Positions 3,771 through 51,955 of a stretch of DNA of 64,000 bases are shown here, in pieces (within the stretch, counting starts at the first letter, position 1; every line of letters starts with the position of its first letter). The stretch comes from Podarcis erhardii (taxonomy: Eukaryota). The stretch lies in the NCBI GenBank assembly GCA_964252035.1, contig OZ176203.1, one strand, 5' to 3'. The notes under the pieces were generated by a model. It ran no database searches and was not told the DNA's origin. It was given only the letters and a program-made list of their open reading frames with translations. The position numbers were made by a program, and so were the translations under genes.

Positions 3771-6700
3771 CTGTGCTCACTAGGCCTGGCATCCTGAGCT
3801 GTTTTGTTTCTTTGAATAGAGTTAGCTTCAATGGCACCAAGCGAGTTATTGCTGACCTGCTCCTGGCACCCACCCTGACACTTGTCTGAACAAAAATGTA
3901 CTGAGCAAGTATTGAAGGCCTTGCATTTTTGATGCTGCTCTGATACCAAAAGGGAAAGAGGTCCAGGGGGCTTGTGTTGCAGCACCAGAGGTCCTGTTCT
4001 GGGTGATCATGGAGTGGACCTCAGGAACATGTGGCAACACTAAAAAGGCCCCTCTGGTCATGAGGACCATAGACTCTGCACAGGGCTCATCCACACTTCT
4101 GCTTGCCCCATGCCTAGAAAGCCCTTCTCCTTTCCTAGGGAAAACCTGCTCTTTAGTGCTAAATTGGAGCCAACTTCCATCTGGAGAAAACCTGAATTGC
4201 TGTTTGCTCCAGAGCATTAAAGAGTAGCTTTCCCTGGGACAAGAGGAAGTGTGGAAGATCCCTTAGCCATCAGTTGTTTAGGACAACTTCCTGTTTAGTA
4301 ACAGGAAAAACCTTAAACCGTGTCCAGGAGCATATTGACAGCTAGTGCAGTTCCTTTAGCAGTGGTGTGTTCTGCACCAACTGCAACTTCCAAACCAGTC
4401 ATAAGGGCAGCAACACACTCCCATTTACTCTGCTTGCTTCCAGTGCACTCCCAACACTGCCTAGTAGGTTGGCTTATTCCCTTTTTAAAAACAAAAAACA
4501 AGAGCCTAGCCTTTGCCTCATTTGGCAACAATGCATTTTCAAATACGGAAAGGAGTCTTCAGTTGTTTTCTGTCTTCTTGGATCCATTCAGATAAGTTTG
4601 GCACAGGGAATATCACTCTGTGAAACTGAAATTGGAACTACTTAATTTGGTTTTCCTTGTAATACATATTCTGGTTCAGATCTGCAATCTTGGCCTGTTC
4701 ACAGATTCAGCTGTAGGGAAAGTGGCTCAGATAGTCTGCTTTGCATCAAGGTGGAACATGCAGGTGAAGGTTGGAACTGATATACATATGGCATAGCAAG
4801 AAGTTTTAAAGTGTTGGCTCTAGCAAGGGTGTGTGTGTTGAAGTGAGGGGTGCGAGTTGGAAGATTCTGGCAGCAAAATGTCTGGACTGGAACTTAGGAC
4901 AGCTCACTACAACATGCTTTGAAAAATAATGTACTTAGAGATTTCTATCCCTTCCCATACTGAGGAATATTAGGGGTAGATGGGAATCAAGCATTCATAA
5001 AATAAGCCACATATTTTCCAGGCTTCTGTTTATATTTTTCACTCTGCCTTCCCATGTTTTGGACTTCATCTATTTTAGGTGATCCCTGTTACTGCCATTG
5101 TCACAGCTTTGATATTGCTCCTCTCTTGATGTGTGAGATACTTTATGGACAAGTTATTATGAGACAAAATACTAAAACAGTTGTGAGATCTCCTTTTACA
5201 TAGACTAAAAATGTAACAAGAATTATCAAGGATGCCCTGATACAAGATACATTAGATGACTTTTGATACACTTTTTCTGTTTATGTTTTATGAAGAACAA
5301 CAATTCTAGTGCTTTGAAACAGATTTGTATAATAACAGTGTGTCCTTGGGGGAAAAAAATCTCATTCTTACAAAATCTATTGTTTTTCTGTAAACATGCC
5401 CTCTTTTTCTCCCTTCCTTTCTCTCTGTGTCCTCAGCACTCCAAAATATTATACAGGGCCCTTAATTAGACACGTTCCTACTATTTATTACCATTTTAAA
5501 GGGTAAGTGGTTAATGGCTTGCGATTGAAAATGCCTTGTAATTAATTATTAACTCAACAGGTCTGACTGCTTTTCTAACCTACCTTGTCTCCAGTGCAAT
5601 CGTACTGTATGTATACGCTAATTCTGAGTAGTTAGATGATAGGGGAAAGGACCTTGGAGGTAGTTCAGCCAATTAAATCAGGTTGCCACAGAGAGTTGCC
5701 GAATGACTACCTTTTATTACAAGACAATGCTGCTTATTTCATATCGCACTTTTAAAAATAAAAACAACAATTAAATATTGAGAAGTATCCTAGGTTGTAC
5801 AAATGGAAGACTGGGACTTCAAGGGGGCAGGGGGAATCACCCAGAACTGGACAAAGTAATCTTTCGACAACAAAGTAAAATAACAAAAATATGGTGTCAG
5901 CATCTGCAGCAACTGCCCAGCCCTGCACCAAAAATGCAAGAACTGGCCCCGTCTTTTGCTTTCCCGGAACAAGTGCAGCAGGGCAGGATGAGTGTGTAGT
6001 GGGATATTGCATGAAGTGCTTTGGCAGAAACACCCAATGAAACAACCTACCATATTTCCAAGCTTCTAGCTGATATCACCTGTTAGTGAACAACAGGAAA
6101 CAATTTTAAAATCAGCCCCTGCAGTAGGGGATGGTGGGGTGGGGTTGCACCACTAACTTGTTCCACTCACTTCAGCTGTATCACTGCTGCCTACTGGGAT
6201 GGAGAGGATGTGGGTCAAGCAGCAGTGAGGTTGGTGTTGTTCAAACACACCAGCAGAGCTAATTCAGCACTCTTGCCAGAATGTTTGCACCTTGCCAACT
6301 TCACCACTGCCCTGCTACTCCCTGTTCTGGAATGCAGAAGTGTAGCAGGTTATAATCTGGGGTAGTTTTGACTATTATTGCAATTGAACTCCGGAGTTTT
6401 TGTGCTCCTAAAGAGCAAATACAGCTCTGTCTTGAATAAGGAAATTGCACAATAAGTGAATAGAGTCCAACTTTCAGCCCAGAAAAGATGGTATGTTTCA
6501 GTAATTTAATCAACTGTTATTTAATTAATTTTAATGAAAAATTTAAGACAACTACAAGTTTTTCCTCTGTGTTAGCTGTGTTTCCTGATGCATGAACATG
6601 GTTTTTCCAAAGCTAGAATCCCAACTTCTGAAATAAGCCTTGGGGACTTGAGACTGCTCTCCAGTTTCAGCCTGTTTAATTTAATTTTTTTTTAAGGGAA

Positions 6701-49292: not shown

Positions 49293-50277
49293 TAGAATCA
49301 TAGAATCGTAGAGTTGGAAGAGACCACAAGGGCCATCGAGTCCAACCCCCTGCCAGGCAGGAAACACCATCAGAGCACTCCTGACATATGGTTGTCAAGC
49401 CTCTGCTTAAAGACCTCCAAAGAAGGAGACTCCACCACACTCCTTGGCAGCAAATTCCACTGTCAAACAGCTCTTACTGTCAGGAAGTTCTTCCTAATGT
49501 TTAGGTGGAATCTTCTTTCTTGTAGTTTGGAACCATTGCTCCGTGTCCGCTTCTCTGGAGCAGCAGAAAACAACCTTCTTCCCTCCTCTATGTGACATCC
49601 TTTTATATATTTGAACAGGGCTATCATATCACCCCTTAACCTCCTCTTCTCCAGGCTAAACATGCCCAGCTCCCTTAGCCGTTCCTCATAAGGCATCGTT
49701 TCCAGGCCTTTGACCATTTTGGTTGCCCTCCTCTGGACACGTTCCAGTTTGTCAGTGTCCTTCTTGAACTGTGGTGCCCAGAACTGGACACAGTACTCCA
49801 GGTGAGGTCTGACCAGAGCAGAATACAGTGGCACTATTACTTCCCTTGATCTAGATGCTATACTCCTATTGATGCAGCCCAGAATTGCATTGGCTTTTTT
49901 AGCTGCCGTGTCACACTGTTGGCTCATGTCAAGTCTGTGGTCAACCAAGACTCCTAGATCCTTTTCACATGTACTGCTCTCAAGCCAGGTGTCACCCATC
50001 TTGTATTTGTGCCTCTCATTCCCCCCCCCCCCCAAGTGCAATACTTTACATTTCTCCCTGTTAAAATTCATCTTGTTTGTTTTGGCCCAGTTCTCTAATC
50101 TGTCAAGGTCGTTTTGAAGTGTGATCCTGTCCTCTGGGGTGTTAGCCACCCCTCCCACTTTGGTGTCATCTGCAAATTTGATCAGGATGCCCTTGAGTCC
50201 ATCATCCAAATCGTTGATAAAGATGTTGAGTAAGACCGGGCCCAAGACAGAACCCTGTGGCACCCCACTAGTCACTC
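49293..50277 (-). mobile_element. 5'-truncated CR1 LINE (~985 bp), young
   Basis: CR1 ORF2 C-terminal coding region, 3' UTR and (ATTCTATG)-type tail (plus strand TAGAATCATAGAATCGTAG at 49293). Confidence 0.97.
49370..50275 (-). pseudogene. CR1 ORF2 reverse transcriptase C-terminal remnant (302 codons including the terminal stop, one internal nonsense)
   Basis: [13 protein letters not shown]...LIKFADDTK (RT catalytic motif)...[13 protein letters not shown]...[40 protein letters not shown]. Internal TGA at 49463-65 (likely CGA>TGA); no frameshift. Confidence 0.95.
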
Positions 50278-50574
50278 TTCTTATAGGGGCTGGGGGGGGG
50301 GAGTGTGGATTACGTTGCATTCTGGGTGAAAGCTACAGATTTGACTTCCTTGTCCATAAATTATCTCAGGGACAGCCAACATAGTGTCCTTCAGTTATTA
50401 CTGGACTTCAACTCCCATCAATGCTATTATTCACAATACTGGCTGGTTCTGATAGGAGCTCAAGAACAACAATATCTGGTTACAGATAGGTAGCCGTGTT
50501 GGTCTGCCATGGTCAAAACAAAATAAAAAAAATCCTTCCAGTAGCACCTTAAAGACCAACTGAGTTAGTTCTAG

Positions 50575-50612
50575 GTATGAGCTTTCGTGTGCATGCACAC
50601 TTCTTCAGATAC
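50575..50612 (-). ncRNA. Minimal type I hammerhead ribozyme motif in the 3' pLTR
   Basis: Minus strand GUAU-CUGAAGA-A-GUGUGCAUGCACAC-GAAA-GC-UC/AUAC: intact CUGANGA and GAAA cores, 4-bp stem I, palindromic stem II, self-complementary AGCU stem III. Predicted cleavage between 50579 and 50578. Confidence 0.88.
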
Positions 50613-50635
50613 ACTGAAACAGAAGTCACCGGACC

Positions 50636-50699
50636 TTTCTATATAGTGAGAAGGTGGGGAGGGGTATTACTCAGAAGGGTGGTGGGAATGGGTGATTGG
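50636..50699 (-). promoter_or_regulatory. Putative Pol II core promoter of the left pLTR (mirror of 50977-51063), firing leftward
   Basis: Minus-strand CCAAT (50695-99), CACCC, CCCCTCCCC and TATATAGAAA (50636-45). Exact inverted copy of the right-arm motifs. Function inferred. Confidence 0.5.
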
Positions 50700-50792
50700 C
50701 AGATAGCTGCGATGAGCCTGTTGACGACTCTTAACGACTGCAATAGGTCTAACAGGAAAAAGCAAGGGGTGAGAAGGTGAAAAATGGCTTTG

Positions 50793-50897
50793 TCATGTAT
50801 AATGAGATAAGAATCCAATGTCTTTGTTCAAACCAGGTCTCTCCATAGTTTTAAGTTTGGTGATAAGTTGCAATTCAGCAGCTTCTCTTTCCAGTCT
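50793..50897 (-). pseudogene. Penelope ORF C-terminal remnant (end of GIY-YIG endonuclease domain), 34 aa + stop
   Basis: RLEREAAELQLITKLKTMERPGLNKDIGFLSHYT*. The RxxxExxxIxxLxT...GLN pattern is characteristic of the PLE GIY-YIG C-terminus. Confidence 0.85.
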
Positions 50898-50976
50898 GGA
50901 ATTTCAGAAATAGCTTTTTCCTGTTAGACCTATTGCAGTCGTTAAGAGTCGTCAACAGGCTCATCGCAGCTATCTG

Positions 50977-51063
50977 CCAATCACCCATTCCCACCACCCT
51001 TCTGAGTAATACCCCTCCCCACCTTCTCACTATATAGAAAGGTCCGGTGACTTCTGTTTCAGT
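50977..51063 (+). promoter_or_regulatory. Putative Pol II core promoter of the right (inverted) pLTR, firing rightward
   Basis: GCCAATCA (CCAAT 50977-81), CACCC (50995-99), CCCCTCCCC (51012-20), TATATAGAAA (51031-40), and Inr-like TTCAGT with A at 51061, 30 nt after the TATA start. Confidence 0.5.
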
Positions 51064-51101
51064 GTATCTGAAGAAGTGTGCATGCACACGAAAGCTCATA
51101 C
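51064..51101 (+). ncRNA. Minimal type I hammerhead ribozyme motif in the inverted pLTR
   Basis: GTAT-CTGAAGA(51068-74)-A-GTGTGCATGCACAC(51076-89)-GAAA(51090-93)-GCTC/ATAC. Predicted cleavage after C51097. Confidence 0.88.
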
Positions 51102-51955
51102 CTAGAACTAACTCAGTTGGTCTTTAAGGTGCTACTGGAAGGAATTTTTTTATTTTGTTTTAACAATATCTGGGTGACCCCCCCCCCCCTGGGTTAGCTG
51201 GTGTGGACAAACCAAGTGGATCCTACACAGTTGGGAAAGAAGATTTACCAGGCTGTATGGCCAGTGGTATATCAGCGTAGCCTATGCAATGTTGCCCCAG
51301 GCACTCACACACAGAATAGATGACTGTGTGCTTACTCATTCTTTCTTCAGTGTAGATGTGTATGCACAGCCACCCCTGATATCTGTGGTGCTATGTGTGG
51401 TTGCCCAGCCCACACATTTACTAGGGGGTGTGTGTGTATGTGTTCAGTGATCTTGGAACCCAGGCCACATATTTCATTCCTACTTCTGCTGCTCCTTCCT
51501 TTGTTTTTCAGTAAAGGCATTTTCCCACCCAGGTGACATATCCCTACCGGTATATAATGTTTAAATATGGAGGCACATATCAGACCTGCCTGGTGAGTTT
51601 CTAAGTCAGGGCACAGAGACGCTGGGTAATAGCAAGAGAAATAAGCTGGCATGGCCAATGGTCATGAGAGTTGTAGTGCAACACTCTGTAAGGATGCATC
51701 ATTCTGGTGACCCCTGCTGTTGACTCCAACATTACTGGTTCAATTTGCAAGAAGATACAGCAGATAAAGTTTTAAACTTACCATGGTTACTGAAACCAAA
51801 CATGGGATATGTGACTGGATTGTCCTTTTGTAAATACACATAATTCCTAACAGGCACAGAGAGTTCTAAACTTGATTTGAACCGTGAGACTGTTATGTAG
51901 GGCGCTGGGTAACTTTTACTCGTGGCATTTTGCTAATACAAATTTCACTACCAAA

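Follow-up and report, generated by a model that had tools for sequence, protein, structure and literature searches.

A head-to-head pair of copies, a target-site duplication and a tail of 30–40 nt on one side only constitute the textbook insertion signature of Penelope-like elements (PLEs) (PMC8557442). In Penelope of Drosophila virilis, promoter activity of the pseudo-long terminal repeat (pLTR) has been demonstrated, and the transcript of a downstream copy begins in the upstream pLTR (PMC2377424); in the pLTRs of Penelope elements from the rotifer Adineta vaga, a putative TATA box and an initiator (Inr)-like sequence were described in 2013 together with the idea of a bidirectional promoter (PMC3846280). 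PLEs also possess minimal hammerhead ribozymes (min-HHRs), the published design of which (PMC4209133) is the layout found in this study. For PAc (Poseidon_Ac) of Anolis carolinensis, a promoter was considered "likely" to reside in the pLTR, with TATA box, Inr and start site not being discussed (PMC11167929). The locus described here lies in a 64,000-nt stretch of Podarcis erhardii contig OZ176203.1 (assembly GCA_964252035.1), the whole of which is referred to as the window. Nt 50480–51161 of the window were found to be a single 682-bp PLE insertion, flanked by an exact 12-nt target-site duplication, AACAATATCTGG, the two direct repeats of which are located at nt 50468–50479 and 51162–51173. 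It contains two inverted arms (nt 50509–50763 and 50913–51167) of 255 nt each that are 99% complementary, and its pLTR carries a conserved promoter-like block ending 3–7 nt before a ribozyme.

In the right arm, CACCC was located at nt 50995 and also at nt 50982, CCCCTCCCC at nt 51012, TATATAGAAA at nt 51031 and TTCAGT at nt 51058, with the A of the latter at nt 51061. These positions agreed with those in an earlier note on this DNA, except that GCCAATCA starts at nt 50976, one base earlier than reported there, with the CCAAT pentamer itself at nt 50977–50981 (+ strand). Relative to nt 51061, the TATA-like box was at -30 and CCAAT at -84, so that the spacing proposed in that note was borne out. 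The TATA-like box TATATAGA (nt 51031–51038, + strand), situated 37 nt upstream of position C3 of the hammerhead, matched TATAWAWR at 7 of 8 positions, and the initiator-like TTCAGT (nt 51058–51063, + strand), which as read from the motif predicts A51061 as +1, was an exact fit to the human initiator BBCABW and agreed with YYANWYY at 6 of 7 positions. A C-rich block containing CACCC and CCCCTCCCCACC occupied nt 50983–51023 (+ strand). A motif scan showed that the left arm mirrors these features on the minus strand, as had been claimed: its promoter-like block (nt 50613–50699) comprised CCAAT at nt 50699–50695, a C-rich segment at nt 50693–50653, TATA at nt 50645–50638 and the Inr A, the predicted +1, at nt 50615.

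Both strands of the window were scanned for the constellation of TATAWA, BBCABW with its A 28–33 nt later, CCAAT between -110 and -50, and CACCC or a GC box, and only these two arms were found to possess it. By first-order Markov simulation, 0.087 constellations were expected per 64 kb, with at least one occurring in 26 of 300 simulations, and none of 60,000 random 170-mers had one within 15 nt of a fixed point; the significance of these figures is overstated because the motif set was chosen after the sequence had been seen. The arrangement of motifs is non-random and no trivial coincidence, its true significance lying below the computed figures, and a start site near nt 51061 is predicted by the motifs.

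The ribozyme in the right arm is a minimal type-I hammerhead at nt 51064–51101 (+ strand), recognised by its core and fold, with the predicted cut at 51097/51098; numbered from nt 51061, it spans nt 4–41 and would be cut after nt 37, in agreement with the earlier note. The ribozyme of the left arm, at nt 50575–50612 (- strand) with the predicted cut at 50579/50578, mirrors it. The core, CUGAAGA ... GAAA-GC-UC, is the same in both arms, and the residues at U16.1 and H17 are those expected of a hammerhead. After CUGAAGA come a single unpaired A, helix II of 6 bp (GUGUGC/GCACAC), GAAA and a 1-bp helix III, with C17 at nt 51097; helix III consists of a single A-U pair around a GC loop (AGCU palindrome) and helix I of GUAU/AUAC plus one G-C pair. 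The ribozyme thus has the helix II of 5–6 bp with an unpaired 5′ base, the helix I of 4–5 bp and the 1-bp helix III with a palindromic loop that characterise this class. No match to the Rfam hammerhead models was obtained in the window, either at gathering score or at E values up to 10, the only other returns being noise and the arms themselves, mis-scored as the MIR838 miRNA hairpin with a score well under the threshold; such a miss is expected because min-HHRs lack helix III and are found by special descriptors (PMC4209133). In some dead related copies, the hammerhead has decayed at the CpG of CGAAA. Helix II (nt 51076–51089 and 50587–50600) is also a perfect 14-nt palindrome, GTGTGCATGCACAC, and in RNAcofold predictions two transcripts paired preferentially through it and not through the AGCU palindrome of helix III; such pairing could compete with an active dimer.

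Conservation of the distance between TATA and hammerhead among PLE families, on which the earlier note had beforehand staked its reading, was examined at loci gathered through a C-terminal protein alignment, namely one each from a turtle (L009), an agamid (L010) and a crinoid (L011), 18 metagenomic loci (L012–L029) and an ENA contig (L030). With a structural descriptor, ribozymes were located 90–420 nt past the end of the open reading frame (ORF) in L009, L010, L011, L016 (doubtful), L018, L019, L022, L027–L029 and L030. Since L018, L019 and L022 were grouped as one lineage and L027–L029 as one family, these made up, with the window, eight independent families. Every 8-mer from -80 to -9 of C3 was then scored with a TATA-binding protein (TBP) matrix, which is approximate (after JASPAR MA0108). 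The best TATA-like 8-mer was at -37 in the window, the crinoid locus and L019, at -38/-40 in the turtle locus, at -35 in L022, at -38 in L027 and at -40 in L030. It was misplaced in the agamid locus (-71, second best -32), in L016 (-51, the ribozyme being doubtful) and in L018 (-19, second best -47), which has a 10-nt insertion relative to L019. The distance was thus kept in 6 of the 8 families, the best 8-mer falling within -40 to -34 (binomial probability ~2e-5, or 1.5e-4 without the window). As a check that requires no matrix, TATAWAWR was sought in these regions with up to one mismatch allowed, and all of its matches were located at -42 to -35. Among the families, the distance from ORF stop to ribozyme ranged from ~90 to ~420 nt, whereas that from TATA to ribozyme was 34–40 nt; CA or TCA was present at -7/-6 of the core in 4 of the 8.

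A canonical hammerhead was not detected within 700 nt past the ORF end in L012–L015, L017, L020 and L023–L026, or else the contig ended early, and these loci were omitted from the spacing test for having no detectable hammerhead or too short a contig. With PLE-like ORF ends at 30–45% identity, they may represent Naiad-like or other ribozyme-less clades, or contigs that end early. A scan of viral contigs for PLEs found none. The painted turtle locus contained, at nt 79646 (- strand), another well-formed minimal hammerhead with neither PLE ORF nor TATA-like element upstream; it probably belongs to a truncated or non-autonomous ribozyme-bearing element and, as such a solo or truncated element, was left out of the test.

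Close relatives were sought with a 36-aa query from the ORF end, which yielded three fragment "proteins", and with a spurious antisense ORF across the pLTR, which yielded five more. The resulting family sample comprised 9 related copies, and the contigs (L001–L008), taken from ENA and Logan assemblies, represent the same family at 86–95% identity. The mean pairwise difference was lowest in the C-rich block at nt 50983–51023 (0.027), followed by the hammerhead (0.039), the segment from TATA to +1 (0.077), the ORF end (0.080), the segment from the cut to the tail-less end (0.096), the upstream 3′ untranslated region (3′UTR; 0.128), the TATA 10-mer (0.150) and the CCAAT octamer (0.208). The C-rich block, which resembles CACCC/Sp-KLF sites, is thus the least variable pLTR segment in the family, below both the hammerhead and coding sequence. 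The TATA variants in the family, TATATAGAA, TATATATAA, TATATTTAA and TAAATATAA, were all A/T-rich, and no indel between TATA and ribozyme was present in any family copy. In contig L001 (nt 490–590), the sequence departs from that of the family just after TATA (TATATTTAAGGA followed by TAAAAGC...) and continues with ~80 nt of unrelated sequence containing AATAAA before the 3′UTR resumes; this is either a partial tandem pLTR lacking the ribozyme or an assembly chimera.

The explanation slightly favoured for these observations is that the pLTR contains an RNA polymerase II (Pol II)-type core promoter with its start 3–7 nt before the minimal hammerhead. The register of promoter and ribozyme is probably real and conserved, although it is still a prediction from sequence, and transcripts probably begin at the ribozyme. 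Each arm is the 3′UTR or pLTR of the element, which in a tandem array lies just upstream of the next ORF, the one that the promoter would drive. The parts of the promoter would be the strongly conserved C-rich (CACCC/Sp-KLF-like) block, the TATA-like box and the initiator; TATA would be used by TBP and Pol II, with the start at or near nt 51061, and the hammerhead would make up the initial ~40 nt of the transcript. Firing of the ribozyme, be it as a dimer or assisted by a protein, would remove a short capped leader carrying the catalytic core and leave a 5′-OH RNA. Because the type-I core lies upstream of the cut, cap and ribozyme would leave together as a 37-nt fragment. In read-through RNA, the ribozymes would be masked, as the earlier note had suggested, by a 255-bp hairpin (-542 kcal/mol) that buries both. 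Since the two copies are joined head to head, each arm faces outward, and the output of the two promoters in such a solo fold-back would be limited, at most, to short transcripts running outward into the adjacent old CR1 sequence.

Several observations weigh against this promoter reading or its consequence of cleavage. CCAAT was present in 3 copies only, being replaced by CCTAT, CCGAT or CTGAT in 4, and is the most variable segment; the claim that it serves as an NF-Y box did not stand and that part is unsupported, because the motif is variable and at least one subfamily lacking it has still multiplied. In the comparison among families, the TBP matrix was approximate and the value found in the window itself defined the centre of the position band; no well-placed TATA-like element was present in two of the eight families (L010, and L016 with its doubtful ribozyme), several matches were weak A/T-rich 8-mers in A/T-rich DNA, and a sample of 8 families is small. 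Penelope of D. virilis, for which the only PLE start site has been mapped, has a TATA-less internal promoter composed of Inr and downstream promoter element (PMC2377424). The start site is at position 371, and a 75-bp intron begins 46 nt downstream of it (PMC2377424); the ribozyme begins at the intron's 3′ terminus (PMC4209133), placing it 121 nt from the start before splicing and 46 nt afterwards. The register is thus not universal, as this start site is TATA-less and 121 nt away from the ribozyme.

Helix I, moreover, can be extended by pairs upstream of nt 51061, although other copies gave these pairs no support. The extended helix (51056–59/51105–08, 51061/51103) was rejected as proof of an RNA start further upstream, the extended fold being no better than shuffles (z = -0.5) and the 51061–51103 pair being missing in most copies. 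As to cleavage, minimal PLE hammerheads cleave poorly and need dimers (PMC4209133), no RNA-seq read of PAc has either of its termini at the cut site, and insertion of PAc proceeds normally when the ribozyme is mutated (PMC11167929). The loss of a capped 37-nt leader, as proposed in the earlier note, is chemically right if cleavage happens, but the lack of PAc reads ending at the cut speaks against it. Furthermore, the reverse-transcription start sites are 64 and 99 nt past the predicted cut, and inserted copies must therefore stem from RNA uncut at the 3′ pLTR, because cleavage there removes these sites. Cleavage in vivo is doubtful, the evidence for PAc being negative.

The A/T-rich element and the C-rich block might instead be conserved for a reason other than initiation, serving the GIY-YIG endonuclease encoded by the element as a preferred site of cleavage or homing, or acting as an RNA signal in the 3′UTR, with transcripts starting elsewhere or arising by read-through. 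An endonuclease site would favour new insertions within pLTRs already present, thereby generating the tandem arrays required by PLEs; the insertion target AACAATATCTGG is itself A/T-rich, and several of the TATA-like matches, TTTATATT, AATATATT and TATTAATT, are poor as TATA boxes. The cleavage motif of PAc, however, is 5′-ATT-3′ on both strands and is not said to be TATATATT, the TATA-like sequence of PAc (PMC11167929), an initiator follows TATA after 30–31 nt in both the window family and PAc, and CA or TCA recurs at -7/-6 of the core in 4 of the 8 families. In vitro, PAc inserts without the pLTR upstream of +20 (PMC11167929); this disfavours an RNA-level role in reverse transcription and leaves room for a DNA-level role, such as that of a promoter, for the conserved block. 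Conservation for these other reasons is considered unlikely, though not negligible. It is slightly more unlikely still that the motifs have no function in this family, the promoter being internal, TATA-less and downstream of the start as in D. virilis Penelope, or expression being by read-through only, and that the concordance is a by-product of similar-length A/T-rich spacers between ORF end and ribozyme. The sole PLE promoter that has been dissected experimentally is indeed internal and lacks a TATA box (PMC2377424), the motifs were defined post hoc, the families number 8 only and CCAAT is not conserved. Yet a constellation expected 0.087 times per 64 kb occurs exactly ahead of the ribozyme, the positional concordance has a P of ~1e-4, the TATA-to-ribozyme distance stays at 34–40 nt across ORF-to-ribozyme distances of ~90 to ~420 nt, and the C-rich block is more conserved than coding sequence.

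Type-3 RNA polymerase III (Pol III) promoters have the TATA and proximal sequence element (PSE) spacing of U6 genes. A promoter of this type would have its TATA at -30 and, beginning at -66, CACCC as part of a PSE-like element, and would produce a ribozyme-bearing small RNA of ~90 nt ending at the T-run at nt 51146–51161, making the pLTR a retrozyme-like non-coding unit. The positions of TATA and of the element at -66 to -47 match U6-type spacing, and a T7/T8 run ~85 nt after +1 is conserved in the family; against this, a PLE ORF of ~2.5 kb requires transcription by Pol II, in L027 the 170 nt that follow the ribozyme contain no T-run, and T-runs are uninformative in A/T-rich families. The segment at -66 to -47 also fits the vertebrate PSE consensus poorly beyond CACC-T. 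A Pol III origin is highly improbable.

The anatomy of the insertion supported the earlier identification of the stretch as a PLE pLTR, as judged from the target-site duplication, the ORF end and the GIY-YIG domain of a close relative. The longer copy, read on the minus strand from nt 50912 to 50480, is 5′-truncated and comprises the ORF C-terminus, 3′UTR/pLTR, hammerhead and tail, as recognised from the inverted repeat, the translation and its 95% identity to L004. It starts within the ORF, and its last ~34 codons and stop of the reverse transcriptase (RT)-endonuclease ORF (nt 50793–50897, - strand), with a translation ending in ...LEREAAELQLITKLKTMERPGLNKDIGFLSHYT before the stop, have homologs in Zootoca/Podarcis (84%) and turtles (65%). 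The ORF is followed by ~180 nt of 3′UTR plus the ribozyme, and then by a 35-nt extension (nt 50480–50514, - strand) without counterpart in the right copy; this tail, delimited by comparison of the arms, contains ACCATGG and AGACCAAC. The shorter inverted copy (nt 50913–51161, + strand), likewise recognised by inverted repeat and arm comparison, consists of pLTR and hammerhead without tail and terminates at ...TATTTTGTTTT. Aligned in register, the arms are identical at 248 of 249 positions, with the sole difference inside a T-run. The 3′ ends of related copies fell into two classes, TTTTGTTTT or after ...CTGTAA, which match the two sites at which reverse transcription of PAc starts (PMC11167929).

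In the L004 contig, which is 95% identical to the window and reaches 233 aa further upstream, the ORF piece had a GIY-YIG match (Pfam, E 7.8e-6), and its homologs, all PLE-derived, were found in Zootoca vivipara and Podarcis muralis (84%), turtles (~65%), an agamid (61%) and a crinoid (48%). The GIY-YIG domain together with PLE-derived homologs in lizards and turtles assigns the element, by sequence, to the endonuclease-containing (EN+) PLEs of lacertid-type lizards; the RT part was not among the family sequences seen. As part of the explanation favoured above, and with the same modest preference, the insertion is considered fairly recent and to have been made as two 5′-truncated copies joined head to head. 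The same fold-back design was observed in L002 and L007, no further copies besides the two arms were present in the 64-kb window, and the insertion itself is an ordinary dead-end PLE fold-back. At the junction (nt 50898–50912), ATTTCTGAAAT in the left copy stands in place of its reverse complement, ATTTCAGAAAT, which is present in all related copies. This segment marks the template switch and represents either a micro-inversion or a short piece of ORF belonging to the right arm.

Downstream of the ribozyme, GTTGGTCT (nt 51116–51123, + strand) can pair with AGACCAAC, situated in the tail of the left arm (nt 50505–50498, - strand), and supplies the 5′ strand of the resulting stem, which is conserved. 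The turtle and agamid families had GTTAGTCT/AGACTAAC in its place, both members of one pair being changed (L009 ~70840–70900, L010 ~5280–5370). The GTTGGTCT/AGACCAAC stem brackets both reverse-transcription start sites and is probably the counterpart of the "AC-rich stem loop" of PAc; beside it, the motif ...TAAGGTGCYAC... is conserved from lizards to the crinoid.

An old CR1-type long interspersed nuclear element (LINE) adjoins or hosts the insertion. Its RT ORF (nt 49463–50320, - strand), encoding 285 aa, showed a Pfam RVT_1 match and the FADDTK motif, and a degraded continuation of the CR1 RT reaches the PLE insertion site (nt 49463–50479, - strand). As a candidate for the RT of the PLE, this 285-aa ORF was rejected, being the RT of the CR1-type LINE. 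An outward promoter in the left arm would read the CR1 RT in sense orientation.

In EN+ PLEs, the hammerhead is universally present and yet dispensable for insertion in vitro, and its cleaved ends have not been seen. A tentative extension, regarded as possible but improbable, is that the fixed register, with TATA ~37 nt before C3, is ancestral in ribozyme-bearing EN+ PLEs from echinoderms to reptiles, that Pol II starts at the first ribozyme helix, and that the hammerhead is a self-discarding capped leader, switching the element RNA between a capped translatable mRNA and an uncapped 5′-OH RNA for use as template or for ligation into circles. If so, the PLE hammerhead would gain the function that has been missing since 2014. 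Should most families start at the first ribozyme helix, the ribozyme would be a device of the 5′ leader and not a cutter of tandem transcripts, and capped ends would be predicted at the equivalent of nt 51061, 5′-OH ends at that of nt 51098, and a 37-nt capped by-product. In lizard genomes, where solo and fold-back pLTRs number in the thousands, these could be small outward-firing promoters.

A full-text search of the literature found no statement tying a TATA box or start site to the position of the ribozyme, and a conserved TATA ~37 nt upstream of the ribozyme core appears to be undescribed so far. Part of the reading in the earlier note is not new, as pLTR promoters, TATA plus Inr in rotifers and hammerheads in pLTRs had already been published. 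Among the closest systems is PAc, likewise an EN+ PLE of a lizard with a minimal hammerhead in the pLTR (PMC11167929), although it belongs to a different family and, outside the motifs, cannot be aligned by eye with the window element. In its published consensus, TATATATT is located at nt 2617, a perfect Inr, CCATACC, has its A at nt 2648 (31 nt later), and the core is at nt 2662. The order of C-rich box, TATA, Inr and hammerhead is therefore the same in both elements, with 45 nt between TATA and C3 in PAc versus 37 nt in the window, and 14 nt between the Inr A and the core in PAc. Both also have a stem-loop at the reverse-transcription start and two classes of 3′ end ~35 nt apart, which in the window are 64 and 99 nt past the cut. 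The ORF of PAc starts inside the ribozyme, an arrangement that does not apply here because the ATG in helix II (nt 51082) meets a stop after 7 codons; the Kozak-like ACCATGG in the tail, ~105 nt downstream of the predicted start, could be the candidate ORF start.

Penelope of D. virilis resembles the window element in having promoter and start in the pLTR and the ribozyme downstream in the 5′ leader, and its 3′ pLTR can drive transcription into flanking DNA; its ribozyme is an atypical hammerhead, helix I of which has 2 bp, and begins ~121 nt from the 5′ end versus a predicted 3 nt in the window. The Adineta vaga Penelope elements, too, have inverted pLTRs with a tail, but the paper predates PLE hammerheads and draws no relation to a ribozyme (PMC3846280), and "bidirectional" there means that a single pLTR has a palindromic TATA which can be read in either direction, not that two arms face outward. 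Outside PLEs, R2 and L1Tc of Trypanosoma cruzi (Pr77/L1TcRz) likewise combine promoter function with a self-cleaving ribozyme at the extreme 5′ end of the RNA, giving an uncapped product (PMC3383444, PMC3185411). Their ribozymes are HDV-like (hepatitis delta virus-like), cut at their own 5′ edge, stay on the RNA and free it from upstream co-transcripts (PMC3185411, PMC3383444). In the window, the cut is predicted on the 3′ side of the core, which does not match processing of the R2/L1Tc type; unlike those ribozymes, a type-I hammerhead cutting near its 3′ side would discard itself together with the cap. Pr77, finally, is an internal promoter overlapping its ribozyme, whereas the putative promoter in the window lies upstream of the ribozyme.

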